DNA of 50,113 nucleotides from positions 2,043-52,155 of the forward strand of contig BCKQ01000033.1 of NCBI GenBank assembly GCA_001600695.1, written 5' to 3'. This document shows, one piece after another, positions 20 to 50,113 of the stretch. The position numbers were made by a program, and so were the translations under genes. Source of the DNA: Ascoidea asiatica JCM 7603 (taxonomy: Eukaryota > Fungi > Ascomycota). The stretch's first letter is position 1, and each line of letters starts with the position of its first letter. The notes beneath the pieces were generated by a model, which was not told where the DNA came from, ran no database searches, and saw only the letters and a program-made list of their open reading frames with translations.

Positions 20-226
20 TTACTCTTTTTTAACTAAAACTTATCTAATGTTTCCTAATTGGGAATTTTCTATTCAAACACTAATTGTTTCCAAATTCAA
101 CGAGAGAACAAATTGGTTATGGATACTTTTGGAAACATTAGAGTATTCCAGTAAATCTTCAATAACTGAAAGGAGTATGCAAAGCATTCGAGCTAGCCGA
201 AGAGGGGTTTGAATTTCACTTAAATT
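20..226 (-). pseudogene. Decayed 5' fragment similar to the N-terminus of the 934-aa orphan ORF (27472-30276)
   Basis: Minus-strand frame reads NLSEIQTPLRLARMLCILLSVIEDLLEYSNVSKSIHNQFVLSLNLETISV*IENSQLGNIR*VLVKKE*. The orphan reads IERLLFILIAVLEDI...PSIHN...IETI...IENKFLNNLDYL. Manual alignment only. Confidence 0.55.
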
Positions 227-379
227 TTAACTGGAAGTATTATTAGAGATACATTATTAACTAACATGCAGCCTCAAAAACTCAGAGTAGTTGATATTCA
301 ATAGAATTTAATAAAGTCTTATGAAATCATCTAAAAGGTTATCAAAATAAACAGAAAACTTGACATAAAATCATCTCAA
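161..379. repeat. Inverted repeat, left copy (partner 49895-50113); may extend through 1-160
   Basis: Position x pairs with 50274-x with no indels. 161-312 is identical to the reverse complement of 49962-50113; five mismatches (313, 341, 359, 366, 376) lie in the inner part. Confidence 0.97.
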
Positions 380-795
380 GATTTTGTTTAAACTGATTTT
401 ACTACATTTAACTGTTATTTTAGCAAACCATTGATTTATAGATAACAATTTATGTCTATAATAAAAGGTACAATTTATAATTTTGAAAATAATGTAACAA
501 AATTCATTCTGATTTCATAATATAACAAATAAAGAAATTAAAGTAAGGAAATAAAAATAATGCAAAAAGTTTAATGATTAACAAAAAAACAACCGAAAAA
601 AATAAGATTTATATCATTTTGAAAGTCTTCTCAAGAATTCAATGAATAATAGGCTTCTATGATATGTAATTAAAAAATAATTCAATAAATTAAGAAAAAA
701 AGCAAAAGATAAATAAAAAAACACCGGAAAAAATTGAATAATAGAATTGTAAAATAGTTAAGGAAAAAAAAATACTGTTGTTATTTACAGGGATA

Positions 796-3700
796 TTATA
801 ATAATGTTCTTGGGTTAACAGGATCCATATCCAAAAAATTAGTGTTTATGGGTGTTAGATTACTCGGGCCTCGCTTCATTCCTAAATGTGAAAACTCAGG
901 TTGATGGATTTCGTTACTGATATTCGGATTCTGATACTGATGACCTCTGTAGTTGTTTTTATTTTCAGAATCCATAACCAGATTGTCAGTTATAAAGTTT
1001 TTCAAATGGTTTTTATAAGACCATCTTTGTTTGAACATAAGAATTGTAGCACGAATTCTCTTTTCTCTGATGGATTTGTCTACTTTTCTCATTAAAATAA
1101 CTCTTTCTAAAAAATCATCTAATATCAAACATTTGTTAGGCTGGAATAGTGTATAAAGCGGAATCTGAGTTAAAACCTTTTGAAATGAAATGCCTTTATG
1201 TTGTTTTTCTTTCATAAACATAACAGCTTCTTCAACAAATCTTTCAAAATCGAGTTTCTTTTTTTTGATTTCAGATACATTTATTGAACTTAAAGATTTT
1301 TCCATTTCCTTCAAACTTAACTCGAACTCATATTTTCTCCATCCAATCTCTTGACTGAACCATCTTTCCTTTAATCTAGGAATTTCATATCTACCATGAT
1401 AAATTTTGAAAGACAATACCCCATCCAATGATCTCAAAAATTTATAAAGATCATTCACTGCAATAAATCCAGTTGCTTCTTTGTCAAACTGTAACCAAAC
1501 TTCTTTGAATTTTCTAATTTCTTGTCTGGTAATTGATGCAGATGCTCCGTTTTCTTGATATACATAACTAAAATTGTCAACGATCAATGAAATGAATAAA
1601 TTTAAAAAAATAAACATTGAAACAATATTCCAACTCATAAAAAGAACTTGGGCATATACTCTACCACCACAATCAGAATATATGGAATCATTGATTGATT
1701 TACAATAAGGTTCTTCGATATAAAAATCTGACATAGTATCATTCCATCCTTCTCCAAAACTCATTTTAAATAAAAGAATTAAAGATTTAATTACAGTTCT
1801 AAAATTTTGATTAGCACTACCATTTGGCCCAATCTTTGTTAGACCAAAAAGTTGATTCATAGCAATTGCATACGTTAAAAATAAAATCATCCAAACATAA
1901 AGTAAGGATGCTAGAGATGGTATACTGGCCGAGGCAAATTTTAGAAGCTCACTTAATCTATTACTCTTTGGAATCACAAATGTAAGAATAGCTAATAAGA
2001 AAGCTTTGGTAATATTAGAATAAGGTGAAGAATCTCTATTAATGAAATAGGATATAAGGCAAAGAACGAAAGCACCAAGTGAAATAATCAATGAAAATAT
2101 GTCCCAATGATTCCTATTTTTAGAATGAATATATGCTGATGGTCCTTTTGCATATAGAATCATTAAGTTATGAAGAAGGAAAAATGAAGAAAAAGCCATA
2201 AAAAAACCATATCGAAGTTCGTCTAAAGCACTATTGGAAGGGTATGTTTCCATTACTAAAATAACAATATGTAACCCTAAAATCATATCATATATAAGGT
2301 TCCAGATCCGAAACTGTATTATATTTCTTTCTACAACCAAGTTATAACAAAATTTTTTTAATTTTCCAATACGTTCTAAATCCGGTCTCACAGAAGGTTG
2401 AACTTGCTTCAATAGTTTAGCAACCTCATACCATGATCGCTGTTCATCTGTTAAATATGCACTTCCCTTTGTTTCTGCATAATTATTAATAATGACAGAT
2501 ATAAACAAATTTAAAATTAAAACAATAGCCACAAACATATATATTATAGGAAAAATAGCATTGTATGGTTGAGCAAACTTTTCTGGTATAGTTCCCACTC
2601 CAGTGCTATCTACCATATTCTGAAACATATTAACCCACCCTTCTAAGGAAGTTATTTGAAATAAAGTTGAAAAAGAGTACCAAAAATTATCAAAAAATAG
2701 ATTAGGATTCTGATACACCCTAGGAGCCAATATGTCCCAATTATAAACAGTGGATTGATATTCATTGTAACATTCTGATTTTGAAACTGAACTATCATTA
2801 CAAACTCCAAGTCTTCCATTAAAAATATTGAGGCCCCATATAGAGAACGGAAATAGCAAATTCAAAGAAATGAAAGAAGCACCCAAAATTTTTCCTAACC
2901 CAGCAATAACAATCTTATGAAATGTATCTTGGGCAGTAAAACTTATATTTAGTAATCTCAAAGCTCTTAAGGCTTTAAAACCTTTAACAACTCGAGAAAT
3001 ATACCCGTCCCCTTTTATAGTGGTAATGAAATTGACCCACAAACTAATCAAAACGATAAAGTCAATTACATTCCACGAAGATTGCATCATACCATTAGGT
3101 GTAAAAAAAAAACCATCAGCTATGAGTTTGACTAAAAATTCAGTTGTAAAAATAACAACAAAAACAAAATCAGTCCAAAAAGCCCAATTCCAGATATTTG
3201 CATCAAAATTATTTGTTTTAGAATATATAGGCGTAACATAACAAGCAATACACACTAATGCCAAAGTTCCAAAAAAAAGTATAATGTTGAATACTCCATG
3301 CAAAATCTTATTTTCTGGCCGTCCGTTAATACGATGACCTCCCTCTGGTTTTACAAACAATTGACAAAAGTTTCTTAAAGGGCTATTAGGCTTAAAGATA
3401 TAAAGCACAGTATTAAAGCTAGGATTCTTTTTCAAATAGTCCTTTTTTTTTGCTTGCAAAATAAGGTTCTCCATTTCAATATTTTTGGCTAGTTTATCGG
3501 CATCAATTGTGTTCTCAATTTCAGTTTTGTGACCTTCAAAGAAAGGGTTTTTGAATAGATTGAATGCTTGGGGTAAGAAGCGTTCTATTAACCTTTTAAT
3601 TTTGTCCATCCATCCATTTTGGTTATAAACCTCATTATTGGTCTGTCCAGTAGGAATTTGACTTTCGTTCAAAAAATCTTTAATTGTACTTTTTTCTTTC

Positions 3701-6581
3701 ATCATTCGAAGAAACTTAGTAGTTTTCAGGGAAAGTCCCTCCGATACATCTCCGTTATTAATTCCATTTCCCTTTTTTTTAGCCCAAACATCCCATAGCT
3801 TTTTTTCATTTTTATCATTCCCAGAAAGGTTTTCATTGAGCTTTCTAATATACTGACGTGCTTGTAACTTTTTTTTTTCTTCTTTAGAAATTTCTAAATT
3901 CTCTGCTATTGCTGCAATGAAAATATTTATAACAAAACTATTAGAAAAAATAAACCAAACTATAATAATTATAGAACCTATCGCACCTACAACCCTGTTA
4001 TTTGCATATTCTTGAAATGTGTATAAGATTTCAGTCCAATTTTCAGTTGTTGTAATTACATATAAAGAAACAAAAGTATTAGGCAATGTCCTTAAAGAAA
4101 AATAGATATCATTGTCGTTTTCTTCTTCATGAGAGATAAATCCTTCAAAAAATCTAGCACAAAATAAAGAACAAAAAAATAAAATTAAGAAATAAAATAA
4201 AGTTAAATGAATCAATGTTTTGAAATTACCAATAATTTTAAACCATAGATTTCTCAATAAAGGAAAAAATATAACAACTCGATAAAACCTAGCGAGTTGC
4301 ATGATTGTTAACCAATCATATACATGCCCAAGACTATTTTTTACTGGGGAAATAATAATAATACTTGTGAAGACAGCTAAAAAAAGGTCAAATATATTTC
4401 TTTTTTTTCTAAAAAAGTTTTTGTAATAACCCCAAGCTGCGTAAACAATAAATCTTAAAAAAATTTCAATATCAAGAAATACTGTAACAGCGACTTCCAT
4501 CCAATAGATTAATATATGTATCTTTTCTGAAGAATCATTCTGACGAAGACACTGAATTATAAGATCTCCCATTATCAATCCAATCCAAACTAAATCAAAA
4601 TGCTTATAGAAGTTCCATTTCTTTTTGAAGTCGTTGGCTTTTATATTTTCACTTTCTTCTTTTTCTTCTTCTTTTGGACCATTTTCTGCTTCTAATGTTC
4701 TTGTTATTTTGAAAGAAGCTACAATGACGGCAATAAATATATTAAGTAACCAAATAGACAAAACTAGAATTGCAACTATATAAAATAGAGCAGCAGCCTT
4801 ATTATCAGAGTCCATAGTCATATACATAAGATCAGAAAATGTGTTCATTGAAATTACCACGTAAACTAGTTCAAAAGCTTGAATAAAATTATCAAAACTA
4901 ACTGTATTACCATAAGGATTTTCACCGACAACACATTTAGAATACATAGGGCATGTAAATCCTTTTACATAGGAACTTGAAGAGTTATCAGAAAGTAAAT
5001 AAGGTCTAGTGATATTGTCAGTGTCAATATAACTTCCACACCATTGCTCGGTATTTAAATAGGTGTCAGATGAATCATCAGGATTTTCCCATAGACAATT
5101 TCTTCTAAGAGAAGATTTAAAACTTTGAAGACCTGCAATTGCAAAAAGAACCCAAAAATATAAAACAAAAATTAAAACATTAAAAAGTTGAGGCAAAGCA
5201 CGATTGAAAGAAGTTATGATTATAGAAATTTCATGGGTCAAATTAACAAGTTCAAATAATTTCAAAGTTGTTAAAGCTCTGAATAAAAAAAAATCATGGG
5301 TTCTATCAAAACCACCAATTGATAAAAATAAAGAAACCCAATATGATGCAATAGCAATAAAATCTAATCTATTTATATGATCATGAAAGAAAGCCCTTTT
5401 AAACTTAAACTCTTTTACATTTTTTAAATCTTCTAAAAATGTTGTTGGATGATTTAAATTTGGTTTACCTGCAAAAGTTCCTATTGGAGCACCATTATCA
5501 CTAAATAAAGTAGGATTTTCTCTTAATTGTGCTTTATTTATCGCCACATAATTAAATTTTTTATAATAATCATAATCATCTACTAATCCAAATGCTATTA
5601 TTTTAAGAATCATTTCTATTGTATAAATTGAAAAAATAAACATTAATATATAATCAGGCCATGTAGAAGAATTTGAATAATAATAACCACTTGTTATTGG
5701 AGGGTTCCATTGTTGATAAGAAACAATAATAGCTTGTAAAATAAGTAAAATAAATAAAGCAAAATCTGTACTTCTTTTATGCTTAGTGAATAATTTTGAA
5801 GCTTTTATACGAATTTTAGATTTTGGAGAAAATATACATAAAGAATCACCATATAATAAATTTTCATTTAATTGTGGTTTTTTAGATAATCTTATATTAC
5901 TATAATCTAAATCATTATAACCGAAATTTATTCTTGATTTTTTTAACCCTGGTTTTATTCTTTCAGATTCAATGGGATTATAAAAATCTATTCTTAAATA
6001 CTCTCTTTGTTTTTTAATTTGAAAATTATTTTCTATAATTTCTGGATTCGTAATATTTCTTTTTGGAGGATTAACAGTAATTTCAGGTATTAAAAGATTT
6101 GTTTTTGTTTTATCACTTAAATGTGTTAAAGAATTTGTTCTTGAACTAATTGATTCACCAGTATGAGATTCAATATCTGAATCTAAATCAGTTTCCATTT
6201 CAGTTTCACTTGAATCATTTGATGAATTATAATCTTCATTACCATGAACAACTCTTGAAGAGATTTTTTGAACAACAGATGAAAATTTTCTTGTAAGATT
6301 AGATTTTCTTGTTGATTGTCTTGAACTTTGAATAGAATTTGTTTCTAAATCTAATGAAAATGGATTTTTTTGATTATTACTTTTAATTGGACTTAAATAT
6401 TGAGAATTTATACTTTTATTTTGATTATCATTGGAAAATGAATCTTGAGAAACTTTAATTATTGGAGAAGGTAAATTAGAACCTAAATTATTTGGAGAAT
6501 TCAAAAATTGATCATCATTTTTTAAACTTGACATTCTATTTGATGATATTGAAGAAGTATTCAAATTATTATTATTATTAA

Positions 6582-6612
<31 letters not shown>

Positions 6613-7962
6613 ATTATAAGATTGAGAAAATTGATAAGGATTTTGATTAATATTTGAAACTGAAGGAGAAACTAAAATTGAGGTTGTAGAATCTCTTGAA
6701 TTTTGTCTTGAATGATTTGAATTATAAGAAGATTTTGATTTTGATCTTGATCTTGATCTTGATTTACTTCTACTTCTACTTCTACTTCTTGATTTTGATC
6801 TTGTTCTTGAATTTGGTTTTAAAGAATTTGAATTTAATTTATCAGTTGAATTTCCAGAAGGTAACCAATGACCTAAAGGACTTTGTAAATCTAATGGATC
6901 ATCATTATTGTTATCATTTGTATTACTATTGTTATTGGTATTGTTATTGGTATTGTTATTGGTATTGTTATTGGTATTGTTATTGGTATTGAAGTTGTTA
7001 TTATTATAGCTAGTACTTTGTTCATTATAATCATTATTATTGTAATTATTATTATTATGAATAAGATTATTATTAATATTATCATTAGATGATTCAAGAA
7101 TTCCAGCAGAAGTTAAACTTGAAGCAAGAGCAGATAAATCACCATCAGCAGCACGAATTGATTTCATTGTAATTCTTTGATTTGAATTTAAATTATTATT
7201 ATTTGATAAATTATCAGTACTTAAATTATCAGTACTTAAATTGTTGTTATTATTATTATTATTATTATTATTAATTGAAGAATTTAAAGGCAGAAATAAT
7301 ATTTTTTCATCATCGTTTTCATTATTTTTATTATTTTTATTATTGTTTATATTTTTTATATTTTCATCAGTTTCATCATCATTTTCAAATTCATATTTAT
7401 TTATAAAAGAAGTAACTCTTGAATTTGGATATGGAGTTTCATCAATATCTAAATTTGAATATCTATAAGAATTTGAATTTAATGGAGTTATTGGATTATT
7501 TATATTTAATCTATTTATATCTAAATTATTATTTAAATTATTATTTAAATTATTATTTAAATTATTATTATTTAAATGATTAATAATATCATTATTATTT
7601 GAATTTGATAAAGAAGAATATTGACTTCTTCTTCTATTTGTAAAAGCATGTTTAATTGGATCAGTTATTGATTGATATGAATTTCTATTATTTTTTTTAA
7701 TTTCATCAATTGGATCATTAATTGAATTTGATTGATTATTTAATTGATTATTTAATTGATTATTTAAATTTGAAGTATTTAAAGATAATATTGGAGTAAT
7801 TTTATTTGAATTTAAATTATTTATTGAAATATTTGAATAATTATTTGATAAAGAATCAAATGGATTTTTATTTTCATTTTTATCTAAAGATTCTGAATCT
7901 GAATCTGAGTCTGAATTTGAGTTTGAGTTTGACTTTGAATTTGATTCAGAATTTCTATTCAT
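796..7962 (-). CDS. CCH1: Voltage-gated-like Ca2+ channel subunit Cch1
   Basis: 2388 aa with four 6-TM repeats. Pore loops VISMNTFSD, TTTENWTE, TSLEGWVN and SFGEGWND give the N-E-E-E filter of fungal Cch1. S4 segments such as FKALRALRLL. Long N/S-rich N-terminus. Confidence 0.96.
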
Positions 7963-8524
7963 TTTTGAATTATTATATTATTTTATATTATATTATGTTA
8001 TATTATATTATATTATATTATATTATGTTATATTAGTAAAGAATTGGGTATTATTAGAAGCATTTATCAATTAGTTATAAGAAACGAGAAGTGAGAATTG
8101 AGAATTAAGAAGTGAAGTGAAAAGAATCTAAGATAATGAAATTTATTAGTTTAATTTAATTAATGATATGAAAAAGTAAATATAATGAATGGCTTTGAAA
8201 TAATAGATAAATAGATGAATAGATGAATAGATGAATAGATAAAAAGATAAAAAGATAAATAGATTTAATAATAAATTTGAGAATATTTTCACGGTAAATA
8301 ATAAATAAAGAGGTACAGTACCGTAGAGTAGTAACTTAGTGTAAGTACTAAGCGAGTACTACGTACCTTAGAAATGTATGAGATAGTGAAAAGCAACGGT
8401 ATAAAAAGAAAGAAATATTAAACAGAGTAATATTTACAGAAGTATATAAGATAATTATATAAGATAATTATATATGGTAATTATATATGGTAATTATATA
8501 ATTTATAAAGAATATGTGATGTGA

Positions 8525-9127
8525 TTAGTAAAGAACATTGTCATATTTTATATTATCATAGATATTACCATTCATAGTTGAATTAACAATGGATTGAAAA
8601 TGAGATTTATTATTTATTAAAATATCAGCAGCAAATTTATTTAAAGGATCATTTGGATTTGGATCTTCAAATAATAAAATTAAACCATATAAAATTGAAT
8701 TTAAATTTAAAGCTGGAGACCAATCTTGTCTTAAAATATTTAAACATATATTACCATTTAAATTAATATTTGGATGAAAAATTTTATTTAAAATTTTAAT
8801 TTTTGGTGGATCAATTGGATAATTATTATTAAAAATTATATTAAATTTGAATATACCATTTTTATAAAATCCATTAATTGGTTTTAAAATTATATTAAAA
8901 TTCATTTTATTATTATTATTTGGAAATATTAAATTAATTGAATTAATTTTATTTAAATCAGATAAATCAGATAATAATCTAATTTCTGCTGGAGAAATTT
9001 TACCATTTTTTTTAGCTAAAGCTTCTTTTTTTTTTTGTAATTGTTTTTTTTTAATTCCTAACTTTAATAATATTAGTAAGATTATTTAGATTATTGATAA
9101 TATTGAAAAATTCTTATTACATACCAT
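8525..9127 (-). CDS. UBC12: NEDD8/Rub1-conjugating E2 enzyme; exon 1 9125-9127 (ATG only), intron 9062-9124, exon 2 8525-9061 (179 aa)
   Basis: UBC core FHPNINLNGNICLNILRQDWSPALNL...FEDPNPNDPLNK. ATG is followed directly by GTATGT. Branch-like TACTAAT at 9072-9078. The AAG acceptor gives in-frame M|LGIKKKQLQKKKE...AEIRL, resembling the Ubc12 N-terminus. Confidence 0.93.
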
Positions 9128-9395
9128 TTGAGTTCTTTCAATATAGAATATTTTGATTAATATATGAATTTATAATAATAAATTGATTGAGTAAGTAACT
9201 TTATTGATATTGATATTGATATTGATATTGATATTTGATCGTAAGAGTATTAATAATAGGCCTGTAAATATACCTCAGTGAACATTATCACATAATAAAT
9301 AGATAAATAAATAAATAAATAAATAAGGGTTTTATCTAAAAGGTAATAAACAGTGACAATAAGATTTAATAATAGAAGTAATAGACAAAAAAGAA

Positions 9396-9509
9396 TGTGA
9401 GCTACGAGGTTCGAACTCGTGCATCCGAAGATATCAGGAAGTTCGTTAAGAAGGACCCAAAAGGGTTTCCCACCTAAACCTGACGCCTTAACCACTCGGC
9501 CAAACTCAC
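9396..9509 (-). tRNA. tRNA-Leu(UAG) with 33-nt intron (9440-9472)
   Basis: GTGAGTT/AGCTCAC acceptor stem; A box TGGCCGAGTGG; anticodon stem TCAGG/CCTGA with TT-TAG-G; long variable arm ATCTTCGGAT; B box GTTCGAACC; T6 terminator downstream. Confidence 0.96.
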
Positions 9510-9691
9510 ACCCGGTTGTACAGACACAGGGAAGGTAACTAGTGGTATTAGTGGGGGTGGTAGTATTAGTAATAGGGGCTGTCATTAGTAATGCATTATG
9601 TAATCAGTCGTGAGACCAAATCCCTGCTACTTCTCTGACCCTTTCATTGCCACTTGGCCCCGAAGGCTGTGGACAGGTGGCCGTGTTGGGT

Positions 9692-9700
9692 GGTGGCAAA
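9692..9700 (+). promoter_or_regulatory. Rpn4 PACE-type element in the UBC12/PCL5-like divergent promoter
   Basis: Exact GGTGGCAAA in a GC-rich intergenic island upstream of a ubiquitin-like pathway gene. Confidence 0.45.
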
Positions 9701-10575
9701 AGCAGCACCAGTTTTGGGTGGTCTGCCGCAGGGGTCTGGAGCTGTGCCCTGTTTTGGGCCGGTAACTCACTGCTTGGCCTCGACAGCGACAATTCCTAAG
9801 AATCTTACTAAGAAACTTGTTAATAAACTTGTTAAGAATCTTACAGTAATTTAATAGATCTCATTTCTTTTACCTGCTTAATCTCTTTTACCGGCAAATA
9901 AAGAAACTATTAACTTTTAACTACTAATTATTAACTATTAAATCTTTAATGGTTTTAATGGCTTTAATGGCTTTAATGACTTTATTCACTTTATTCACTT
10001 TTTAAGGATGGTTTTTAATCATCCTCAAATTCTTTATTGATTTCAAAATCCTATTTATTTAAAGCCTTTGATTTCCATATTATTCATATATTTCATCATT
10101 TATTTCATCATTTATTTATCTATTAATCCATTCATTCATTCTATTCTCTTTATTATATTCATCATCACTTTGAAATATTATCCTCAAGTCAAAAAGAATA
10201 ATTCAAAAATATAATTCAGAAATATAATTAATAATATATTATTAATCGGCGAATTAATATTAATGAAATCATCTTTATTATATTATCCTTATTATCCATA
10301 TAATATATAATATAATCATTTTAAATTACTTATTTTACTCATTACTAATTATCATTTTATTTTTCATTAACACATATTACATATTACATATCAATTTCAT
10401 TTCATATCATTTTATTCTACTTCATTTCATTTCATTTCAATTCAATTCAATTCATTTCATTTCATTCGGATCATTTAATTTCACTTTAATTTCATTTCAA
10501 ATTTTATTTCTATTTCTATTTTAATATTATTTTAATATCAAATATTCTTTACAACTTTTATAAATAAGATTAAAA

Positions 10576-10590
10576 ATGTCTTACAATTAA
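10576..10590 (+). promoter_or_regulatory. Short uORF (MSYN*) upstream of the PCL5-like cyclin
   Basis: AAAA-ATG-TCT-TAC-AAT-TAA with strong yeast start context, ATG 135 nt upstream of the main ATG. Confidence 0.45.
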
Positions 10591-10710
10591 ATTTAATTAT
10601 CTTTAATCTATTACCTATTAATTATTACCTACTTAATATATTCAATCTATTCATTATTCATATCATATCATATCATATCTTATCATATCTTATCATATAT
10701 AATAATTAAT

Positions 10711-10957
10711 ATGAGTGTAAATATACCCATTAATAAATCCATTAATAAATCCACTAATCAATCCATTAATCAATCCATTAATAAATCCACTAATCAATCC
10801 ATTAATCAATCCATTAATCAATCAAATAATGATTTAATTAAAACTCCATCCTCCAATTCAAATTCAAATACAAATTCAAATACAAATTCTATATTCTCTT
10901 CTTTTAATTCAATCAATACTCAATCAACTAATGATATTATTGATTCTAAAACTATAG

Positions 10958-11004
<47 letters not shown>

Positions 11005-11711
11005 TTTAATGAAATTATTGAAAAAAATTGTTTAAATATTCAAAATATTTCAATAAATAATGAAATTTTTAAAAAAAATTTATTAGCAGATTCTTTAATT
11101 ACAACAACTGCAATTTTATTAGAAACTTTATATTCAAAAATATCTTCAACAAATAATATATCCAATACCAATAATATAAATAATATAAATAATATAAATA
11201 ATAATGAAAAAAAATTAAAAAATTTAATTGATTTAATAAATTTTATAAAAATTATTTTAAAAAGATCAAAATGTTCTCATACAACTTTACAATTATCTTT
11301 ATATTATTTAATTAAATTAAATAATATTATAAATTTACAAATTTTAAATTTAAATAATTTTATTTTAAATTTAAAAAAAAATAATTCAAATTCTTCAAAT
11401 AATGATAATTTTTTAAAAATTTCAAATTATTTAAAAAAAAATCCATTATTATGTAAAAAAAAAACATTTTTAATTTGTTTAATTTTATCAAATAAATTTA
11501 TTCAAGATAAAAATTATAATTTAAAATCTTGGTCTTTTATTTCTGGTATTAAAGATTTAAATTATTTAAAAAAAATTGAAATTTTAATATTTAAAAATTT
11601 AAATTTTAATTTATTTATAAAAAATTTAAATTTTTTAAATTGGTCAAAAATTTTAATTTTTTTTAATTCTTTAATTTTATCAACTAATTTTAATTCAAAT
11701 TTATTAAATTT

Positions 11712-11743
<32 letters not shown>

Positions 11744-12132
11744 CCACCAGCAAAGATAATTTAAATATAAATATAATTGCGACAAAACTTGAAGCCATAA
11801 AGGCTCGTTGGGCGCTAATTATAAAAAATTTAAATCCAGATGATAATTATAATTTATTTACAAATTTTGATTATTTTTATATTTTATTAAAAGATCAAAA
11901 TGATTTAAAAGAAAAAAAAATGGAAGAAAATTTAATTAAATTAAAAAATATTAATTTAAATAATAAATCTATTTTACCTTTAACAATTAATAATTTAAAT
12001 GTTTTTAATAATCTTAATAATATTAATGATCATATTAATATAAATAAAAAAAGAAAATTTTCAAATCTTAATAAAGATATCAAAACTATTGCAAGTAGTA
12101 AAGATATAAATAAAAAACTAAAAATTAAATAA
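10711..12132 (+). CDS. PCL5: Pho85 cyclin (Pcl family), most like Pcl5
   Basis: Cyclin box FIKIILKRSKCSHTTLQLSLYYLIKL...LLCKKKTFLICLILSNKFIQDKNYNLKSWSFISG...LNFNLFI. Orthology assigned by motif recall. Confidence 0.75.
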
Positions 12133-34106: not shown

Positions 34107-34702
34107 TATTGTCTATCAATTAGTATCTCTTTGATTATCTCTTCTTCTCTGTCTCCATCATCACCACTTTCATCACTTTCACCATCTTCTTCTTCTTCTT
34201 CTTCTTCTTCTTCCTCTTGTTTTTGTTTTATTCCCGAAAGAAATAATTTTTTTAAATTCAAAACAAGAAAGTCACCTGATATAATGGTATCCATCTTTTT
34301 GGTTGTTGTACCAGCCTTACTAAGCCACGTTTACAAATTCACCATCCACACTCGCGTATTTCAGTATTACGTAACTGCACCTGACCAAAACCATTCAACA
34401 TTCTGCTTCTTCTCTGCTCGCTTCTTCATTATCGCCTTTATCACCTTTTATCTTTATTGTCTCTTGTTTATTCTTCCACTTTCAAATAAACATTAACATT
34501 AACATTAACATTACAATAAAAATATTAAACTTCTCCTGAAGCTAGCTAATCATTATCAATAAATATAAATATAAATATAAACATAATAACAATAATAACA
34601 ATACTATATCTATCACTCTTTTAATCAAATAATACTACTGGATAATAAATATCCAAGAATAATTATATTATCATATCTTAATAGTTATTCCAATCTATAG
34701 TA

Positions 34703-37735: not shown

Positions 37736-37904
37736 ATTTTAGATATATAAATTATGTAATTATTAAAAATGTATATTAATTAACTTGTAATTAATATTGT
37801 AGATTAATAATAATTGAATAATATTAATAGGTTTAATATAAATAGGTTTAATATAAAAATGAAATAATTAATTTTTTTTTTAAAACGGAAAAACAAAAAA
37901 AATA

Positions 37905-37998
37905 GGCCCGACGCGGGGCTCGAACCCGCAACCTTCTGATAACTTTTCTAATACTTTAGTTTAAGAGTCAAATGCACTACCGATTATGCTAGCCAGGC
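37905..37998 (-). tRNA. tRNA-Lys(CUU) with 21-nt intron (37941-37961)
   Basis: GCCTGGC/GTCGGGC acceptor; D arm TAGCATAATCGGTAGTGC; anticodon stem TTTGA/TCAGA with CT-CTT-A; T arm GCGGG-TTCGAGC-CCCGC; T-run terminator. Confidence 0.95.
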
Positions 37999-38262
37999 GA
38001 AAGACGATTATTTTTGCAAATTCGATTGATACAGGAAAATAGGATAAAAAGAATTTAGTATGACGGAACATCAAGAAGCTACGAATTAGAATGATAATAT
38101 ATTTTAATTTATAAATTAGTTATATATTTTAGAAATAACATAGATAATAGATAGTAGATAAAAGATAAGAAAAACGAGATAAATTAAATAAGAAGTGAAG
38201 ATTGAGATAAATATATTAAATTAAATTAAATTAAATTGGATTAAATTGGATTAAATTGGATT

Positions 38263-39492
<1,230 letters not shown>

Positions 39493-40451
39493 TTATTTTA
39501 TTTGATATAGAGATTGATTGATTAGGATAAAGATAAGATAAGATAACTAATCTATTATTATTTTATTATTTTATTTATATGGGAAATTGCAAATATAATA
39601 CAATATAATTATAATTACGATACAATTACAATTACAATTAGTGTTATATTTGTGTTAAAAAGGATGGTTTTAAAGAAGATGAAAGAGAAAAAGGCGATGG
39701 ATGTGAGAGATAATGATAGATAATGAGGAAATGAGCACTATTTATACCAAGAGTAATGGCAGTGATGGGAGTGTAATTAATAAAGAGCACCCATTGGCCC
39801 TGGAGTGGCGCCAGTGGCGATTATCGTTATCAGCGCAGCTTCAGCAGTAGCAGCAGTAGTTAAGAGCGTGTTGGTTAATGGTCAATGGAGTAATACAGCA
39901 ACAGAGAAATAATAATAGTAAGAAAGCAGTGATGTGATTGCAGTGCTGGGGGGCAAATCGCAAAAACAGGTTTAATTGAAAAACAGTCAGGTGACAAACA
40001 GGTCGGGATTAACTTACTATCAGGATTACTTAAAACGGATACCTTTATAATCAGGATTGCTTACACCAGGATATATCACGTGTATTTTTAATCACGAGGT
40101 ATAAACGGTCACCTGACACATATACGAGATTTTGCTGTGATTGGCCATCTCCGGGAGCAGTTTCCGATGAGAAATGACCCGCTGGACTGGCTTCGCTTCG
40201 AACCTAAACCTCGAGATTCATATATTTATTGAAAATTTATCACTTTTACTCATACTCTTTTTTTTTTTTATTGAATTTCTACCCATTATTTATTTATTAC
40301 TTTTATTATTTTATATTTAAAGTATCAAAAAAACTTTCGAAGATATTTTCTTTTTAAAAGAATTGGATTGAAATTATCCAGAATATAATATATAATCTTC
40401 ATTATATATAATCTCCAATATATATATATTGTCTCCAATAATATATTAATA

Positions 40452-43400
40452 ATGTCTTCATCTCAATCTTCTGATTCAAAAACTGATATCTTAATATTAC
40501 CAGGTCCACAAGCTTTATCATCTTTTAGAATTAATAATTTAATAAAAGTAATAAGTAGCAATATAGCCAAAGATTCAAATAATAATAATAATAATGATTT
40601 AAAATTAACTAAAATTCAATCATCTTTTATTCATTATATTTCTTTAAATATCAAAAAAGAAAAAATTTCAAATTCAGATTTAATTAAAGTTAAAAATTTA
40701 TTAAATTATGATAATTTTGATTTAAATTTTAATAATTATTTATCAAATAATATTTTCAATCAATATCAATCAACTGAAATAGATCAATTAAATTTAGATA
40801 AAAATCAAATTTCAATTACAATCTTACCAAGATCTGGTACTATTTCTCCATGGTCTTCAAAAGCAACTAATATTTCAAATGTTTGTGGGTTTAATTCAAT
40901 AATTAATAGAATTGAAAGAGGTTTAACTCTTCTTTTAACATTTAATAAAAATATTAATAATTCAACTATTTCTACAATTCATTCAAATTTAATCTCAAAT
41001 AATTCAATTTTTGATAAAATGACTCAAACTTTATCTATTAATAATTTACCAAATTTTAAAGAAATTTTATTTAAATTTAATAATCCAAAAAATTTTAATG
41101 AAATTGATTTAAAAAATTTAAAATTTCAAAATATTAATTTAGGTTTATCATTAAATGATTTTGAAATTAATTATATAATTAAAAATTTTAAAAATTTTTT
41201 AAAAAGAAATACTATAAATGATATTGAATTATTTATGTTTGCTCAAGTTAATTCAGAACATTGTAGACATAAAATTTTTAATGCAAATTGGTTTATTAAT
41301 AATATTAAAAAAAATAATTCATTATTTAAAATGATTAAAAATACTCATAATTTAAATAATTTTAATAATAATACTTTAAGTGCATATTCTGATAATGCTG
41401 CTGTTTTTAAAGGTAATAAAGCTTATTTTTATTCTCCTGATTTAAATAATAATAATATTTGGTCTTCAAATTTAGAATTAATTAATACTTTAATTAAAGT
41501 TGAAACTCATAATCATCCAACTGCAGTAAGTCCATTTCCTGGTGCTGCAACTGGTTCTGGTGGTGAAATTAGAGATGAAGCTGCTGTTGGTAAAGGTTCA
41601 AAAACTAAAGCAGGTTTATCTGGTTTTAATGTTTCTGATTTAAATATTCCTGGTTTTATACAACCTTGGGAATTAAATTTAGGTAAACCAAATCATATTG
41701 CATCTTCTTTAAATATAATGATTGAAGCTCCTTTAGGTTCTGCAGCTTTTAATAATGAATTTGGTAGACCTTGTATTAATGGTTATTTTAGAACTTTAAC
41801 AACAAAAGTTTTAAATAATGATAATGTTTTAGAATATAGAGGTTATCATAAACCAATTATGATTGCTGGTGGTTTAGGTGCAATTAGATCTAATTTAACT
41901 TTAAAAGATAAAAGTATTAAACCAGATGATTTAATTATTGTACTTGGTGGTGAATGTATGTTAATTGGTTTAGGTGGTGGTGCAGCATCTTCAAAATCTT
42001 CTGATGAAAAATCTGCTGATTTAGATTTTGCTTCTGTTCAAAGAGGTAATCCTGAAATGCAAAGACGTTGTCAACAAGTTATAGATTCTTGTGTTTCATT
42101 AGATTTAAAAAATCCAATAAAAAGTATTCATGATGTTGGTGCAGGAGGTTTATCAAATGCTTTACCTGAATTAGTTTATGATAATGATTTAGGTGCAATT
42201 TTTGAATTAAGAAATATTTTATCTTTAGAACCTGGAATGTCACCAATGGAAATTTGGTGTAATGAATCTCAAGAAAGATATGTTTTAGGTATAGATCCAA
42301 AAGATTTAAAATTTTTTGAAAATTTATGTAAAAGAGAAAGAGCACCATTTGCAGTTGTTGGTAAAGCAACTTTAGAAAAAAAATTAATTTTAAAAGATAG
42401 TTTATTCAATACAACACCAATTGACTTAGAAATGTCATTTTTATTTGGTAAAGCACCAAAATTAGAAATTAATACAAAAATTGAACCATTAAATTTAAGT
42501 AAAGAAAATTATAATATTTTTAATAATGATATTAATGAAGCTTTAAGAAGAGTTTTAAAATTACCTTCAGTTGGTTCAAAATCTTTTTTAATTACAATTG
42601 GTGATAGATCAGTTACAGGTTTAATTGATAGAGATCAATTTGTTGGACCATGGCAAACACCAGTTTCAAATGTTGGTGTAACTGGAACATCATTAAGTCC
42701 TGAAGGTATTGTAATAAAAACTGGAGAAGCTTTAGCTATGGGAGAAAAACCAACTTTAGCAATGATTTCAGCTTCGGCATCAGCAAAAATGGCAGTTGCA
42801 GAATCTTTATTAAATATTTTTAGTTCAAATATTACAGATATTAGAAATGTTAAATTATCAGCAAATTGGATGGCAGCAGCATCACATAAAGGTGAAGGAG
42901 CTAAATTATATGAAGCAGTTGAAGCTATTGGATTAGATTTATGTCCAGCATTAGGAATTTCAATACCAGTTGGTAAAGATTCAATGTCAATGAAAATGAA
43001 ATGGGATAATAAAGAAGTTGTATCACCATTATCAGTTGTTATAACAGCATTTGGACCAGTTGAAGATACATCATTAACATGGACTCCAGAATTAAAAAAT
43101 AAAGAAGATACATTATTAATTTTAGTTGATTTATCAATTGATTATAAAAAAAAATTAGGTGGATCAGCATTATTACAAGTTTATGGAGAAATTGGTAATG
43201 AAGTACCAGATATTCATGATTCAAGAATTTTAAAAAATTTTATTAATAGTTTAATTGATTTACATAAAGAAAAAGATTTAATTTTAGCATATCATGATAG
43301 ATCAGATGGTGGATTAATTATTACATTATTAGAAATGGCATTTGCAGGTAGAGTTGGATTAGATATTAATATATTTAATGAAAATAAAGAAAATAAATTT

Positions 43401-44582
43401 GAAATTTTATTTAATGAAGAATTAGGAGCAGTATTTCAAATTAAATTAAATGATTATGAAATTTTTGAAAAAATTTTAAATAATAATGGAATTGGATCAG
43501 ATTTTATTCAAATTATTGGTAAACCAAATTTAAATAGAGTTTCTAAACAAAATATTTTAATTTCAATTAATAATGAATTAATTATTGAAGAAAATAGAGG
43601 AGAATTACAACAAATTTGGTCAAAAACATCATATGAAATTCAAAAAATTAGAGATAATCCAAAAAGTGCAAAAGAAGAATTTGAAAATATTTTAGATGAT
43701 AAAGATCCTGGATTATTTTTTGATTTAAAATATGATTTTAAAAATAATTTAAATTCATTTACAAGTAAACCAAAAGTTGCAATTTTAAGAGAACAAGGAG
43801 TTAATGGACAACAAGAAATGGCATGGTGTTTTGAACAAGCTGGATTTATTTCAATTGATGTTCATATGACAGATTTATTAAATAAAAATATTAATTTAGA
43901 TGAATTTGTTGGAATTGCAGCATGTGGAGGATTTAGTTATGGAGATGTTTTAGGAGCTGGAAATGGATGGGCAAGTTCAGTTTTATATCATGAAGAAATT
44001 AAAAAAGAATTTAAGAAATTTTTTAAAGAAAGAAAAGATACATTTGCATTTGGAGCATGTAATGGATGTCAATTTTTAAGTAATATTGCAAATAATGGAG
44101 AAATTATTCCAGGTACAGAAAATTGGCCATTATTTAAAAGAAATGAATCTGAACAATATGAAGCAAGAGTTTGTATGGTTAAAATTGAAGAATGTTCAAA
44201 GATTAATAAAGATGTTAAAGAGAGTATATTTTTAAATGGAATGGAAGGATCTAAATTACCAATTGCAGTTGCACATGGAGAAGGTAAAGTAACATTTAAA
44301 AATAAAGAAGAATTTAAAAATTTTGAAAATGAAGGATTAGTTGCAATTAGATTTATTAATAATTATGGAAAAGTTACAGAAAGATATCCATTTAATCCAA
44401 ATGGATCACCAAATGGTATAACTGGTATTAAAACACCAAATGGTAGAGTTTTAGCCATGATGCCACATCCTGAAAGAGTTTGTAGAAAAGAAGCAAATTC
44501 TTGGTATCCAAGTGAGGAAGATTGGGGAGATTATGGACCTTGGATTGAATTATTTAGATCTGCAAGAAGATGGGTTAATTAG
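40452..44582 (+). CDS. ADE6: Phosphoribosylformylglycinamidine synthase (large PurL)
   Basis: [70 protein letters not shown]. Confidence 0.98.
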
Positions 44583-44914
44583 CCAATATAATATTGTGAG
44601 TAATATTGGATTTTGTTTATGACTGTATATATTTTTATTATTTTATATTCTTTTTTTACTTTTTTATTATCTTTATTATCTTTATTATACTTTTATTCCA
44701 TTAGTTTATTCATATTCATATTCTTTAATCTTTAATCTTTATTTTGTATTTTGTATTCTGATTCTTCTAATTCACCTTCTTCGGTAACTCGGTAACTCGG
44801 TAACTCAATAGTTTACAGTGGTCAGGTGACTGTACTTTCACGTGCTCTATTATACAGCATATTATCTTATATCCTCACTAAATCCGATGATAACAATCAA
44901 TTGCTTTTATTTGT

Positions 44915-44980
44915 AATTGTTAGGCAATTGTTAGGCAATTGTTAGGCAATTGTTAGCCAAATGTTAGCCAAATGTTAGTA
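44915..44980. repeat. 11-bp minisatellite (AATTGTTAGGC / AAATGTTAGCC)
   Basis: About six degenerate tandem units are visible. Confidence 0.8.
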
Positions 44981-45391
44981 ATGATTGAGTAATGTTTAGT
45001 AATAACCATGCAAAGAGTACCACATATCTAGTCTTTCTTTTATTTATACTGTATTATCCAATTAGCGCACTGCATCGCCTGCTTACAACCCTTTTTTATC
45101 ACCAGTTCACTAAATATCTATGGTTAAATTAAAGGTTTTAATACAATTTCATCGGAAATGGCTTACGAATAATTATCAAATTATTATTAAAGCATTATTA
45201 AAGGATTAATATTAATAATGATTATTATTTTATTAGTAAATGATGATTGTAATTGAATTAAATTAATCATTATATTATTCAATTCAAAAATCAATTGGTA
45301 TTTATTCATCAATATATCTTTGTTTTTTAATCTCAATATATTATGATCAATCTATAAATATAAATATTTAATATAAAAAAATAATCTTTAG

Positions 45392-46510
45392 ATGAGATTA
45401 TCAACATTTATAATATCTTCATTAGTTATAATTTTAGCATTGTTTTCAAATAAATTTTCAAAATTTTTTAATCTTATTATTAAAAATAATAAAATTGTTA
45501 ATAATAGTAATAAAAATAATTCAATTAATAAAAATAATAATCTAATTAATAAAAGCTTAGATTTCAATATGACAATACCTCCAGTTTATTTTTTTTCTCA
45601 TGGTGGTCCAACTTTTATGTATGGTAATGATGAATATGGTGCAGATAAAGGTGCATATAAAACAACTCAAAAAATTGGTTTAAATATTTTTAATAAAATT
45701 AAACCAGATTATATAATTGTAATTTCTGCACATTGGGAATCAAATTCAAATGATCAATTTAATATTCAAATACCTGAAGATACTTTAAATAAAGATCCTT
45801 TAGAAAATTCATTAATTTATGATTTTTATGGATTTCCTGATTATATGTATAAAGAAAAATTTAAATCTTTTAATAATTTAAATTTTGCTAAAAAAATTAA
45901 TAATTTATTAATTTCAAATAATTTAAATTCAAAAATTGTTAAAAGAGGTATTGATCATGGTACTTGGGTACCATTAAAAGTTGCTTTTGATTCAAATAAT
46001 TTAAATTTAGATAAAAATATACCTTTAATTCAAATATCTTTAGTTAATTCAAATTCTTTATCTTTTGATATTCATTATAAATTTGGTAAAATTTTATCAA
46101 ATTTAAGAATCTCTGATAATGTTTTAATTTTATGTAGTGGAATGTCAACTCATAATTTAAGAGATATGAGTAAATCAATATATTCTGGTAAGAAATATTT
46201 AGATTATGTACCAAAATTTAATTCTTTAGTTTCAAATATTTTAATTAATAATAAAGGTTCAGATAGATTAAAAGGTTTTAAAGAAATGGTTGAAAATGAT
46301 AATACTAGAAGTTTATTATATAATGCTCATCCTACTTTAGAACATTTTATGCCAATAATTGTTGCTGCAGGTGCTGGTGAAAATGATAATGTTAAAGAAT
46401 TATATACAAGTTCTACTGGTTCTCTTGGATGGAATATATATGAATTCTCCAGAACTTCTGAAGAAATCAATAAAGATGCTAAAGATGATTCCACTTCTAG
46501 TAACTTATAA
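45392..46510 (+). CDS. LigB-family (class III, 4,5-DOPA-dioxygenase-like) extradiol ring-cleavage dioxygenase
   Basis: FFSHGGP, VISAHWE, IYDFYGFP, RGIDHGTWVPL, SGMSTHNLRD, AHPTLEHFMP. Confidence 0.92.
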   Translation: MRLSTFIISSLVIILALFSNKFSKFFNLIIKNNKIVNNSNKNNSINKNNNLINKSLDFNMTIPPVYFFSHGGPTFMYGNDEYGADKGAYKTTQKIGLNIFNKIKPDYIIVISAHWESNSNDQFNIQIPEDTLNKDPLENSLIYDFYGFPDYMYKEKFKSFNNLNFAKKINNLLISNNLNSKIVKRGIDHGTWVPLKVAFDSNNLNLDKNIPLIQISLVNSNSLSFDIHYKFGKILSNLRISDNVLILCSGMSTHNLRDMSKSIYSGKKYLDYVPKFNSLVSNILINNKGSDRLKGFKEMVENDNTRSLLYNAHPTLEHFMPIIVAAGAGENDNVKELYTSSTGSLGWNIYEFSRTSEEINKDAKDDSTSSNL

Positions 46511-47148
46511 TTATATTTATAATTATAAATAGCTAGATACCTATATAAAAAAGTATTAAATATTAGATATCAGATAGAATATATTATCAAATCACTAATA
46601 AACAAATTCGTGTCTTGAATCGACGTGCTTTCTGCCTGATTTCCGTGGGAAATTCACTTACCGCCGAATAGTAACAATCATTGCTCTCTATCTCTGATAC
46701 GTTTATTTATTCTTTTATTCCTTTATTGGGATTATCTCGATTATATCTCAAATATATTTCATCAATTGATTGATTCTTCATCTTTATATCTTTATCCTTA
46801 TCCTAACTTTTATCTTTATCTTTACTTCCAATGGATCATTCTTCATCTATTCAATTCACTTCTTATTTTGTCTCTTAATCAATCCTCTAATTGGCTGCTT
46901 ATCATATTCTATTCATATTCTCTGTACCTTTTTTAAACTTTCAAATAATCCTATTTAAACGTGCCTTCAAATTTTTGCTTATTCAAAATATGTTAAATAA
47001 TAATATATATATAATCTATATAATGAAATAATTTAAATAATCTCAATTCAATTGAAAAATTTCACTCATATTTCAATATCCATTACATATCTTTATATTT
47101 TATATTATACATAATTCAAAATTGAAGTTTTTTTTTTTAAAACAAAAA

Positions 47149-49836
47149 ATGGCTAAACAAAATTCAAACTCAATACCTGATTCAATTAAAGAATCAACTC
47201 CATTATTAAAAAATATTAGAAGAAATTCTCAAAATTTTCAATTAAAATCTCCTCCAAAATTAAAAAGAAATTCATCAAATAATTCAATAATTCCAATAAT
47301 TTCTCCAATTTCAAAAAATTTAACATTTAGAAATTTAGATTTATCTTTAGATTCAAATACAATTATTAGATCGATTTCTCCTGCAAGATCCATGAAAAGA
47401 TCTCATTCTTTACAATCAAGTAATTTAAATAATCATCAAAATTCAAAAAAATTCATCAATCAATCTCAATCTCAATCTCAGTCTCAATCTCAACAAATTC
47501 ATTCAAATCAAAATTTAATTTCTTCAGCTTCAATTAATAATGATAATTTTATATCCAATAATTCTTTAAAATTCTTTTATAAAGATAACAATAACAATGA
47601 CAATGACATAAATGATGATAAAAACAATGATAATGACAATCATAATAAAATTAGTAACGAAAATAATCAAATAAATAATCAAATAAATAATCAAAATAAT
47701 GATGAAAATTTTGATAATAATAATATAAGTATTTTTTCTCAAGCAAGACTGTATTCTCCAATACATATTGAATTAAATGATTATTATACAATTAAAACAA
47801 AATTACCCTTTAAACAATTATTACCATATTATTTACCTTGTGCTTCTTGGATTCCAGAATATAATTTTTCAAATTTCTTAAAAGATTTTATTTCTGGTTT
47901 AACTTTAGCTTCTTTTCAAATTCCATTATCAATATCTTATTCAAATACAATTGCTCATACTCCAACAATTTCTGGTTTATATGGTTTAATAATTCCTCCA
48001 TTTATATATACAATCTTAGGCTCTGTACCACAAATGATTGTTGGTCCAGAAGCTGCAATCTCTTTAGTTATTGGTCAAACTGTTGATAGAATGAAAATTC
48101 ATCATGATGAATTAATTAATCCAGTTGATATTTCCGTAATTTTATCGATGATTTCTGGTTTAATATTATTATTATCAGGTTTATTTAGATTTGGTTATAT
48201 TGAAAATGTTTTATCAAAATCTTTATTAAATGGTTTTATTTGTGCTGTTGGTATAATAATGATAATAAATTCTTTAATTGGTGAATTAAAATTAGATATT
48301 AATAATTCAAATGAAATTTTAGATTCTCCTTTTGATAAAGTTAAATTTATTATTATTCAATTAAATCAATTAAATTATCATTTACCAACTTTTTTTTTAA
48401 GTTTAGTATCTTTAATAATAATTTTATTAATTAGAAATATTAAAAAAAAAGATAAATTTTTTAATATAAAATTTTCAAATTCTTTTAAAACTATTTTAGC
48501 TTGTTTTCCAGAAATTTTAACAATTGTGATAATTACAACTACTTTATCATATATTTTTAAATTTCAAGAAAATTATGGTATCGCTCATCTAGGTTCAAAA
48601 GGTACTAAAAGTAATCATAATATTTTATTAAATTTTCCATTTTCAAAAAAAAAATTACAATATTATAGAGATTTATTATATCCTTCATTAACAATTGCAA
48701 TTCTTGGGTTTTTAGAATCTACAACAGCTTCTCAAACTTTAGGTTCCGTTTATAATTTACCAATTTCTTCAAATAGAGAATTAGTTGCTTTAGGTATGAT
48801 GAATATTGTTGGATCAAATTTTACTGCATTAGCTTCATTTGGTGGTTATGGTAGATCAAAAATTAATGCATTATCAGGTGCTGTTACTACAATGTCTGGT
48901 TTTATAATGGGTTTTATGACTTTATTAACTGTATTATATTTATTAAAATATTTTCATTATTTACCTGTTTGTATATTATCAGTTATAACTACAGTTGTTG
49001 GAATATCATTACTTAGTGAAATCCCTAAAAATATATATTTTCATTGGAAAGATAAAGGATGGAGTGAATTAACTACATTTTTTCTAACCTTAATTATATC
49101 CTTTTTTTATGGTGTTGATACTGGAATCATTTTTGGATCAGGATTTTCTATTCTTAGAGTTGTAAAACATTCATCGAAATCTAGAATTCAAATTTTAGGT
49201 AGAATTCCTAATACAAACAAATTTATGAATGCTGATGAAGAAATTCCAGAAGAACTTACAATTGATGATGTACCATATATTATAACAAGTAATAAAAAAG
49301 CCTGTTCAAATTTAGAAGAAATTGAAGGATGCTTAATTGTTAAAATTCCTGAACCACTAACATTTACAAATACAGCAGATTTGAAATTAAGGTTAAATAG
49401 ATTAGAAAAATATGGATCTTCAAGAAGTCATCCAGCTATGAATAGAGTAAGGAAGCAATCCATGACCAGATATGTTTTGTTTGATTTACATGGAATGACG
49501 GAAATTGATTCATCTGCTGCTCAAATTATAAGAGATATAATCTTAAGATATAAAGAGAGAAATATTTTGGTTTTTTTCTGTAGAGTCTCAAATAACAGTT
49601 TAATTAGAGATAGACTAGTTAATTCAGGTATAAGGGAAATAATTTATAAAAAAAAGGATTTTCTTAATTCTTTTGCTAATGGAAATTGTAATATCAATGA
49701 AAGATTTACAAATTTATCATTTAATCAACGTAAACTGATTTATTATCTTGATATTAACGAAGCATTAGAAGCTGTCGACGTTATTGAAAGACAAAATAAC
49801 AATGTCGGAGATAATTATTATACTTGTATGACTTAA
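47149..49836 (+). CDS. SLC26/SulP anion (sulfate-type) permease with STAS domain, YPR003C-like
   Basis: PYYLPCASWIPEY, DFISGLTLASFQIPLSISY, MIVGPEAAISL, SSNRELVALG, FGGYGRSKIN; STAS LIVKIPEPLTFTN...FDLHGMTEIDSSA. First ATG is at 47149. Confidence 0.93.
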   Translation: MAKQNSNSIPDSIKESTPLLKNIRRNSQNFQLKSPPKLKRNSSNNSIIPIISPISKNLTFRNLDLSLDSNTIIRSISPARSMKRSHSLQSSNLNNHQNSKKFINQSQSQSQSQSQQIHSNQNLISSASINNDNFISNNSLKFFYKDNNNNDNDINDDKNNDNDNHNKISNENNQINNQINNQNNDENFDNNNISIFSQARLYSPIHIELNDYYTIKTKLPFKQLLPYYLPCASWIPEYNFSNFLKDFISGLTLASFQIPLSISYSNTIAHTPTISGLYGLIIPPFIYTILGSVPQMIVGPEAAISLVIGQTVDRMKIHHDELINPVDISVILSMISGLILLLSGLFRFGYIENVLSKSLLNGFICAVGIIMIINSLIGELKLDINNSNEILDSPFDKVKFIIIQLNQLNYHLPTFFLSLVSLIIILLIRNIKKKDKFFNIKFSNSFKTILACFPEILTIVIITTTLSYIFKFQENYGIAHLGSKGTKSNHNILLNFPFSKKKLQYYRDLLYPSLTIAILGFLESTTASQTLGSVYNLPISSNRELVALGMMNIVGSNFTALASFGGYGRSKINALSGAVTTMSGFIMGFMTLLTVLYLLKYFHYLPVCILSVITTVVGISLLSEIPKNIYFHWKDKGWSELTTFFLTLIISFFYGVDTGIIFGSGFSILRVVKHSSKSRIQILGRIPNTNKFMNADEEIPEELTIDDVPYIITSNKKACSNLEEIEGCLIVKIPEPLTFTNTADLKLRLNRLEKYGSSRSHPAMNRVRKQSMTRYVLFDLHGMTEIDSSAAQIIRDIILRYKERNILVFFCRVSNNSLIRDRLVNSGIREIIYKKKDFLNSFANGNCNINERFTNLSFNQRKLIYYLDINEALEAVDVIERQNNNVGDNYYTCMT

Positions 49837-49894
49837 AGTACTGGAAATAAAACCTGTCTATTATCTTTCTATATTCAAAATTTAAAACTTTTTT

Positions 49895-50113
49895 TTGGGA
49901 TGATTTTTTGTCAATTTTTCTGTTTATTTTGACAACCTTTTAGATGATTTCATAAGACTTCATTAAATTCTATTGAATATCAACTACTCTGAGTTTTTGA
50001 GGCTGCATGTTAGTTAATAATGTATCTCTAATAATACTTCCAGTTAAAATTTAAGTGAAATTCAAACCCCTCTTCGGCTAGCTCGAATGCTTTGCATACT
50101 CCTTTCAGTTATT
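49895..50113. repeat. Inverted repeat, right copy (partner 161-379), truncated by the window end
   Basis: Reverse complement matches 161-379 at 214/219 positions. 50048-50113 (+) encodes NLSEIQTPLRLARMLCILLSVI. Confidence 0.97.

Follow-up and report, generated by a model that had tools for sequence, protein, structure and literature searches.

The inverted repeat and the block between its arms

We analysed a stretch of 50,113 nucleotides from Ascoidea asiatica JCM 7603, called the window here, which corresponds to positions 2043-52155 of the 58,386-bp contig C33 (BCKQ01000033.1); the public assembly of A. asiatica NRRL Y-17576 comprises BCKQ01000001-71 (PMC6041473). In the window, a single-copy block of genes (U) lies between the two arms of a near-identical inverted repeat (R, with R' as its second copy), and we interpret this arrangement as a probable inverted segmental duplication whose arms are kept alike by gene conversion and which would be prone to inversion. 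The structure of R and U is known here from one assembly, and it has three main parts:

Window 1..379, no strand: left arm of the inverted repeat, inner 379 bp; it continues to the left as far as the contig start (C33:1-2421), with weak similarity on to 392.
Window 380..49894, no strand: single-copy block U, ~49.5 kb, with ~16 protein genes and a tRNA-Lys and with no N.
Window 49895..50113, no strand: right arm of the inverted repeat, inner 219 bp; weak similarity begins at 49882, and the second assembled copy runs to C33:54357, probably on to C33:58386.

An earlier note, made from the letters of the window, had described positions 161-379 as the reverse complement of 49895-50113 (214/219 identical, no insertions or deletions, all mismatches on the inner side) and had argued that the true repeat must be longer than the window reveals, and alignment bears out both statements. 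The five mismatches fall at window positions 313, 341, 359, 366 and 376, and the outer 152 bp are identical. A repeat search of the window stretches the pair to 232 nt at 95% (161-392 / 49882-50113), and the other inverted pairs that it returned are all low-complexity repeats of AT or Asn codons at 71-94%; the pair is far beyond chance. On the full contig, C33:1-2421 is the reverse complement of C33:51937-54357, which means that an arm of 2,421 bp is assembled twice around the segment, without a gap and with five true mismatches. All five lie within the innermost 67 bp, and the outer 2,354 bp contain no true mismatch. Window positions 1-160 pair with the sequence immediately past the window end, and the match only seemed to halt there because the window was cut exactly between the Ns at C33:2042 and 52156; its own 50,113 bases contain none. 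In the assembled arms, eight Ns stand at matching positions in both copies and two in the right arm alone, where the left arm has C.

Copy number was searched across the whole A. asiatica assembly (71 contigs, 20.3 Mb). This count, which the earlier note had suggested, gave exactly two copies, both on C33, so that two near-identical inverted copies enclose a single-copy gene block. One option raised in that note, two recent copies of a dispersed repeat that broke the assembly, therefore holds in part: the repeat did break the assembly, as the left arm reaches the contig end and the right end of the contig forks into two others, but with just two copies it is not a dispersed repeat. The other matches of the arm were Hsp70 paralogues at 66-74%, tRNA-Ser copies, paralogues of a 297-codon open reading frame (ORF) at 68-69% and low-complexity DNA. 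The idea that window 20-226 is a degenerate remnant of the N-terminal part of a 934-codon ORF was rejected, as tblastn gave no match better than E = 3.

The arms are not equally alike along their length. The inner edge differs at 5/67 positions (7.5%), the remainder of the arm at no more than 10/2354 (Fisher p = 3e-5, with each N counted as a difference), and the identity of the arm core is 99.6-100%. A similar decay is seen at the inferred outer edge, so that the core is more alike than the edges in this edge/core comparison within one assembly. Because of this gradient we infer an older duplication whose core would be repeatedly homogenised by gene conversion, and the earlier note had likewise read the gradient as fitting an inverted repeat homogenised by recombination or gene conversion.

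The block itself carries ordinary genes. We scanned against Pfam all ORFs that reach 120 codons within the window or its flanks, and the genes of U with a match encode a CCH1-type channel, a UBC enzyme, a class-III aminotransferase, an Arf-family GTPase, a ZIP transporter, an ARID protein, a uricase, a CWC2-type protein (Torus+RRM), an aspartyl protease, an FGAM synthase (ADE6-type), a LigB-family protein and an SLC26 sulfate permease; four further ORFs of U gave no Pfam match. The two genes next to the arms are the following:

Window 796..7962, minus strand: CCH1-type calcium channel, 2,388 codons (Ion_trans 1.6e-121, GPHH).
Window 47122..49836, plus strand: SLC26 sulfate permease of the YPR003C type (Sulfate_transp 3e-84, STAS).

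The stop codon of CCH1 lies 417 bp into U from the left arm, and this arm boundary is thus in the 3' intergenic region of CCH1. At the other end, the SLC26 stop is ~46-59 bp from the right arm, and the boundary is likewise 3' intergenic. The closest match of the SLC26 gene is in Ascoidea rubescens (70% identity), and YPR003C was named among its matches.

Extent of the arms, chromosomal layout and arm genes

R is certainly at least 2.4 kb long, and each arm is probably ~6.45 kb (C33:51937-58386), the left one having been shortened by the assembler. The left arm stops at base 1 of the contig, where the next base would match C33:54358, an N, and the contig start cuts the 297-codon ORF that is whole in the right arm. 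The outer part of the 2.4-kb arm has no overlap with any other contig; a repeat that stopped at this point would thus lack any assembled left flank. The right end of C33, in turn, forks: the final 95 bp coincide with C17:1-95, and the final 655 bp reappear, reverse-complemented, at the end of C21 (C17 and C21 measure 309 kb and 190 kb, respectively). The two continuations differ from the first base past the fork, with ~50 bp at roughly 90% identity and a 33-bp in-frame insertion or deletion, after which no similarity is left. At the site of the N at C33:58191, C21 reads an unambiguous G.

The distribution of single-base Ns also points to a long arm. All 20 of the 20 such Ns in C33:50000-58386 fall in 52156-58191, compared with 0 in the 50-kb window, 0 in 12.6 kb of flank (C17:1-6000 and C21:184000-190581) and 1 in ~79 kb of internal loci of other contigs, which is a 400-fold enrichment in the arm stretch (p = 8e-26). 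We take these Ns as sites of read disagreement, which would correspond to differences between the two copies of R. Elsewhere in the assembly, single-base Ns gather within 80-280 bp of the starts of many small contigs, namely C34, C36, C37, C39, C41, C43 and C45 (in the first 300 bases of each). In this assembly generally, Ns seem to mark read disagreement, whether from repeat or from allele differences, and not gaps.

Neither end of U was found on any other contig, and because of this both ends of U must join the inner end of R. This gives four adjacencies, namely the outer end of R with C17 and with C21, and the inner end of R with the CCH1 end and with the SLC26 end of U. Given two copies of R, the only layout that would fit them all is C21 - R - U - R' - C17. 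The repeat explains why the assembly breaks here, and the proposed join covers ~560 kb. The orientation of U within this layout is not fixed by the assembly; the orientation in which the 49.5-kb block was assembled is arbitrary.

The arm, read along the right copy on C33, contains these features:

C33:52452-53084 and 53084-53980 (mirrored at C33:378-1906), plus strand: two pieces of an Hsp70-like gene, both with a strong Pfam HSP70 match.
C33:54153-55046, minus strand: 297-codon ORF with no Pfam match.
C33:55835-56596, plus strand: 253-codon ORF with no Pfam match.
C33:56857-56940, plus strand: tRNA-Ser(AGA), by tRNA call.
C33:57208-57957, plus strand: RMI1-like gene, by Pfam.
C33 ~57990-58386, minus strand: 3' tail of MAF1, a gene that spans the fork.

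The Hsp70-like gene is present as two abutting ORFs of 210 and 298 codons. Compared with the paralogue on C12, its residues 9-199 and 309-603 align in different frames, and the gene has thus an internal deletion of ~110 codons together with a frameshift, identical in both arms. Paralogues of the 297-codon ORF, 68-69% identical in DNA, are present on C4 (two copies), C8 and C9, and the ORF looks like a member of a small lineage-specific gene family as far as these matches go.

MAF1 tells the two copies of R apart. On the C17 side, the frame across the fork is open for ~522 codons and corresponds to a complete MAF1 (Pfam Maf1, 1e-32), with all of the Maf1 domain beyond the limits of R; the C21 continuation keeps the frame open for no more than 101 bp past the fork. 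In A. rubescens the gene order is MAF1 - MNN10 - TRS23 - RMI1, and tblastx of these A. rubescens genes gave matches at C17:158-4006 and C33:57322-57501. Within 6 kb outside each arm, C17 carries MAF1, a TRS23-like gene and an MNN10-like gene, and C21 carries an endosulfine (IGO)-type and an INSIG-type gene. Because MAF1 is complete only at C17, and because of the A. rubescens order, we regard the C17-side arm as parental and the C21-side arm as the derived inverted duplicate. None of the A. rubescens loci examined has the duplication, which should therefore postdate the split between A. asiatica and A. rubescens. The A. rubescens ortholog of SLC26 is found ~650 kb away on the same scaffold as the MAF1 cluster, with none of that cluster's genes nearby, and within 10 kb on either side of it there is no other gene in common with C33, C17 or C21; synteny of SLC26 in A. 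rubescens thus gives no indication of which end of U was the first neighbour of R.

Competing explanations and the mating-type loci

Homologous recombination between inverted repeats can invert the DNA that lies between them. We consider it likely, with a probability of about 0.7, that the structure at this locus is an inverted segmental duplication which is kept alike by gene conversion and is prone to inversion. As to its origin, the copy at C17 is the parental one and that at C21, with only the 3' tail of MAF1, the derived one; a single inversion whose staggered breaks fell on the two sides of R could yield this layout. Gene conversion would then keep the arms near-identical, while the extreme inner edge and the inferred outer edge would have drifted. 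As a consequence, a crossover between the arms would invert U, and from this analysis such a capacity appears plausible. An inversion would break no gene and shift no local context, because the arms match each other over kilobases and each boundary falls in 3' intergenic DNA. Since an inversion would break nothing, a silent structural polymorphism is to be expected and not a switch; in detail, this would be a silent, recurrent inversion polymorphism with meiotic recombination suppressed in heterozygotes, and neither a programmed switch nor a mating-type system. It is an ordinary structural feature of a known type and involves no new mechanism.

Several points weigh against this interpretation. 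The stretch C33:54358-57731 was assembled once, and its two-copy status relies on the fork, on parsimony and on the Ns, which could instead reflect allelic differences, as this strain is diploid. An identity gradient like the one seen could also arise without ongoing conversion if a very recent duplication had been superimposed on an older short one. Finally, the lengthening of inverted repeats by the assembler around truly invertible regions has been documented (DISCOVAR, PMC6692504), which we think an unlikely cause in this case.

A static young duplicate, too recent to have diverged and with no appreciable conversion or inversion, is rather unlikely. The core identity of 99.6-100% would fit it, as would the absence of the duplication from the A. 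rubescens loci examined, which places it after the split, and the Hsp70-like gene that is broken identically in both copies. However, a static duplicate predicts equal identity right up to the ends, whereas the inner 67 bp differ by 7.5% and the outer fork decays through ~50 bp at roughly 90% and a 33-bp insertion or deletion. The Ns are also patchy, with 11 in C33:1157-2202 versus 0 in C33:1-1156, as in a conversion mosaic.

An assembly artefact would mean either that R is single and the contig follows a folded-back path or that a shorter true repeat was lengthened. The left arm does reach the contig end, the Ns of the two arms coincide in position, which is what a single collapsed consensus used for both would give, and inverted repeats lengthened to contig ends have been documented in other yeast assemblies (PMC6692504). 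Nevertheless, we consider an artefact unlikely, because all four junctions exist as distinct sequences. The inner junctions differ (5 mismatches in 67 bp, then unrelated unique DNA), and so do the outer ones, with a complete MAF1 on C17 and only its tail on C21. At two sites an N in one arm faces a C in its counterpart, the ends of U have no alternative junction anywhere in the assembly, and a single R cannot place the four adjacencies on a chromosome. Thus, the two copies show the independent junctions and the differences that an artefact would lack.

It is highly improbable that the repeat serves a mating-type (MAT) flip/flop or another programmed switch in which inversion would bring genes into an expressed or a silenced position. 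The geometry does resemble FF1 of the sister species A. rubescens, in which 2-kb inverted repeats surround 44 kb (PMC6692504), and an AGE1-like gene of A. rubescens lies close to MAF1. However, U carries housekeeping genes, and its boundaries are in 3' intergenic DNA, so that inversion alters no gene or promoter. Moreover, six-frame scans of the genome for MATalpha_HMGbox, HMG_box and Homeodomain were negative for alpha1, HMG-box and homeodomain sequences on C33, C17 and C21, and in the whole genome MATalpha1 was found on C50 only. C50 (C50:1-11819) has the order AGE1-like (ArfGAP/PH), MATalpha1 and a STE20-like kinase gene. Its start matches C26:38471-38801 at 76%, and a homeodomain frame at C26:52615-52758 is probably MATa1, so that by sequence C26 would fit the published MATa allele. 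The MAT alleles of A. asiatica are thus assembled apart, MATalpha on C50 and MATa on C26, as published for this heterothallic diploid, in which one allele has been described as AGE1alpha-MATalpha1-STE20alpha (PMC6692504). The opposite ends of the segment do not carry MATa and MATalpha genes, and the repeat is unrelated to the mating-type locus; it is not a MAT flip/flop.

These results also bear on what the earlier note had said about mating type. Its remark that no MAT gene is visible inside agrees with the Pfam scans, which find none among the ORFs scanned (120 codons or longer, window plus flanks). Its suggestion of an inner inverted repeat with the switched loci just outside fails: the flanks lack MAT-type domains and carry MAF1/TRS23/MNN10 on one side and IGO/INSIG-type genes on the other, and MAT is on C50 and C26. 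The remaining possibility, a non-MAT invertible region, is the one that we retain; its non-MAT part holds, and inversion itself enters as a potential. In A. rubescens (KV454476.1:1159112-1180611), the AGE1-like BAR/PH gene is 2.6 kb from MAF1 and adjoins MNN10-TRS23-RMI1, which means that in this species a marker of the ancestral MAT region neighbours the parental site of R. The AGE1-MAF1 adjacency is not found in the A. asiatica stretches that were read (C17:1-26000, C21:164000-190581 and C33); in A. asiatica AGE1 is within MAT on C50 and C26.

A centromere was set aside on gene content, without a dedicated test, as U holds ~50 kb of housekeeping genes and known inverted-repeat centromeres of yeasts have gene-free cores of 1-10 kb (PMC5010909). 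No telomere or centromere feature, the kind of silencing element that mating-type flip/flop regions have next to one arm, was seen beside the arms, where no dedicated search for one was made, and the outer flanks run into large contigs with ordinary genes.

Comparison with known inverted-repeat systems

The closest parallel is the flip/flop of Saccharomyces cerevisiae chromosome XIV, in which 24 kb with 15 genes lie between 4-kb inverted repeats and inversion has been documented (Salzberg et al. 2022, PMC9731477). Both structures consist of a block of ordinary genes inside a kb-scale, gene-containing and near-identical inverted repeat with homogenised arms and no link to MAT. However, both orientations are present across strains and species in S. 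cerevisiae chromosome XIV, whereas here there is one assembly and the orientation as assembled. The repeat on chromosome XIV contains sporulation-specific Centroid genes near the centromere, whereas that of A. asiatica contains the broken Hsp70-like gene, RMI1, tRNA-Ser and two unnamed ORFs. The A. asiatica repeat has no known link with a centromere, and the duplicate is missing from those A. rubescens loci that were examined.

With the FF1 systems of Ogataea polymorpha and A. rubescens (PMC6692504, PMC5720833), the A. asiatica locus shares one kb-scale pair of inverted repeats, a similar segment size and recombination between the arms as the expected mechanism, and A. rubescens belongs to the same genus. 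The difference is in what is enclosed: FF1 has MATa and MATalpha at the segment ends, but the A. asiatica block lacks them and has MAT on other contigs, and the FF1 interval of A. rubescens is non-coding, whereas U is full of housekeeping genes. What we describe is a large and apparently conversion-homogenised inverted duplication around housekeeping genes, and the sister species, A. rubescens, employs this geometry to switch mating type. Should U occur in both orientations, the locus would offer a natural setting in which to study how flip/flop architectures come about before they acquire a use, and it would suppress recombination locally in heterozygotes.

The DISCOVAR cases of Cyberlindnera saturnus and Starmera quercuum (PMC6692504) are alike in having a near-identical inverted repeat at the end of a short-read contig. 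There, arms of more than 100 kb flank MAT genes and extend to the two ends of the contig; C33, unlike these cases, has one arm cut short and both of its outer junctions as distinct sequences on other contigs.

In the order Ascoideales, Saccharomycopsis schoenii has several large inverted repeats, including one with 8.5-kb arms at 99.98% (PMC13148404). The arms of these macro-palindromes are comparable with those on C33 and C40 of A. asiatica, a member of the same order, but the S. schoenii example has a 2-kb spacer and MAT cassettes, whereas C33 has a 49.5-kb spacer and no MAT genes. C40 (33,048 bp) is free of Ns and consists of 8.14-kb inverted arms with 99.95% identity, running to the two contig ends and separated by 16.8 kb. 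Its ends were checked for a fork like that of C33, and they gave dispersed low-complexity sequence, no clean overlap and no assignable flanking contig. We would suggest only tentatively, and with some doubt, that U is a recurrently flipping non-MAT flip/flop, which would be the second example in budding yeasts after S. cerevisiae chromosome XIV, and that together with C40 and S. schoenii it reflects a tendency throughout Ascoideales to form and keep large gene-bearing inverted duplications. If true, this tendency could have been the raw material for the MAT flip/flop of A. rubescens.

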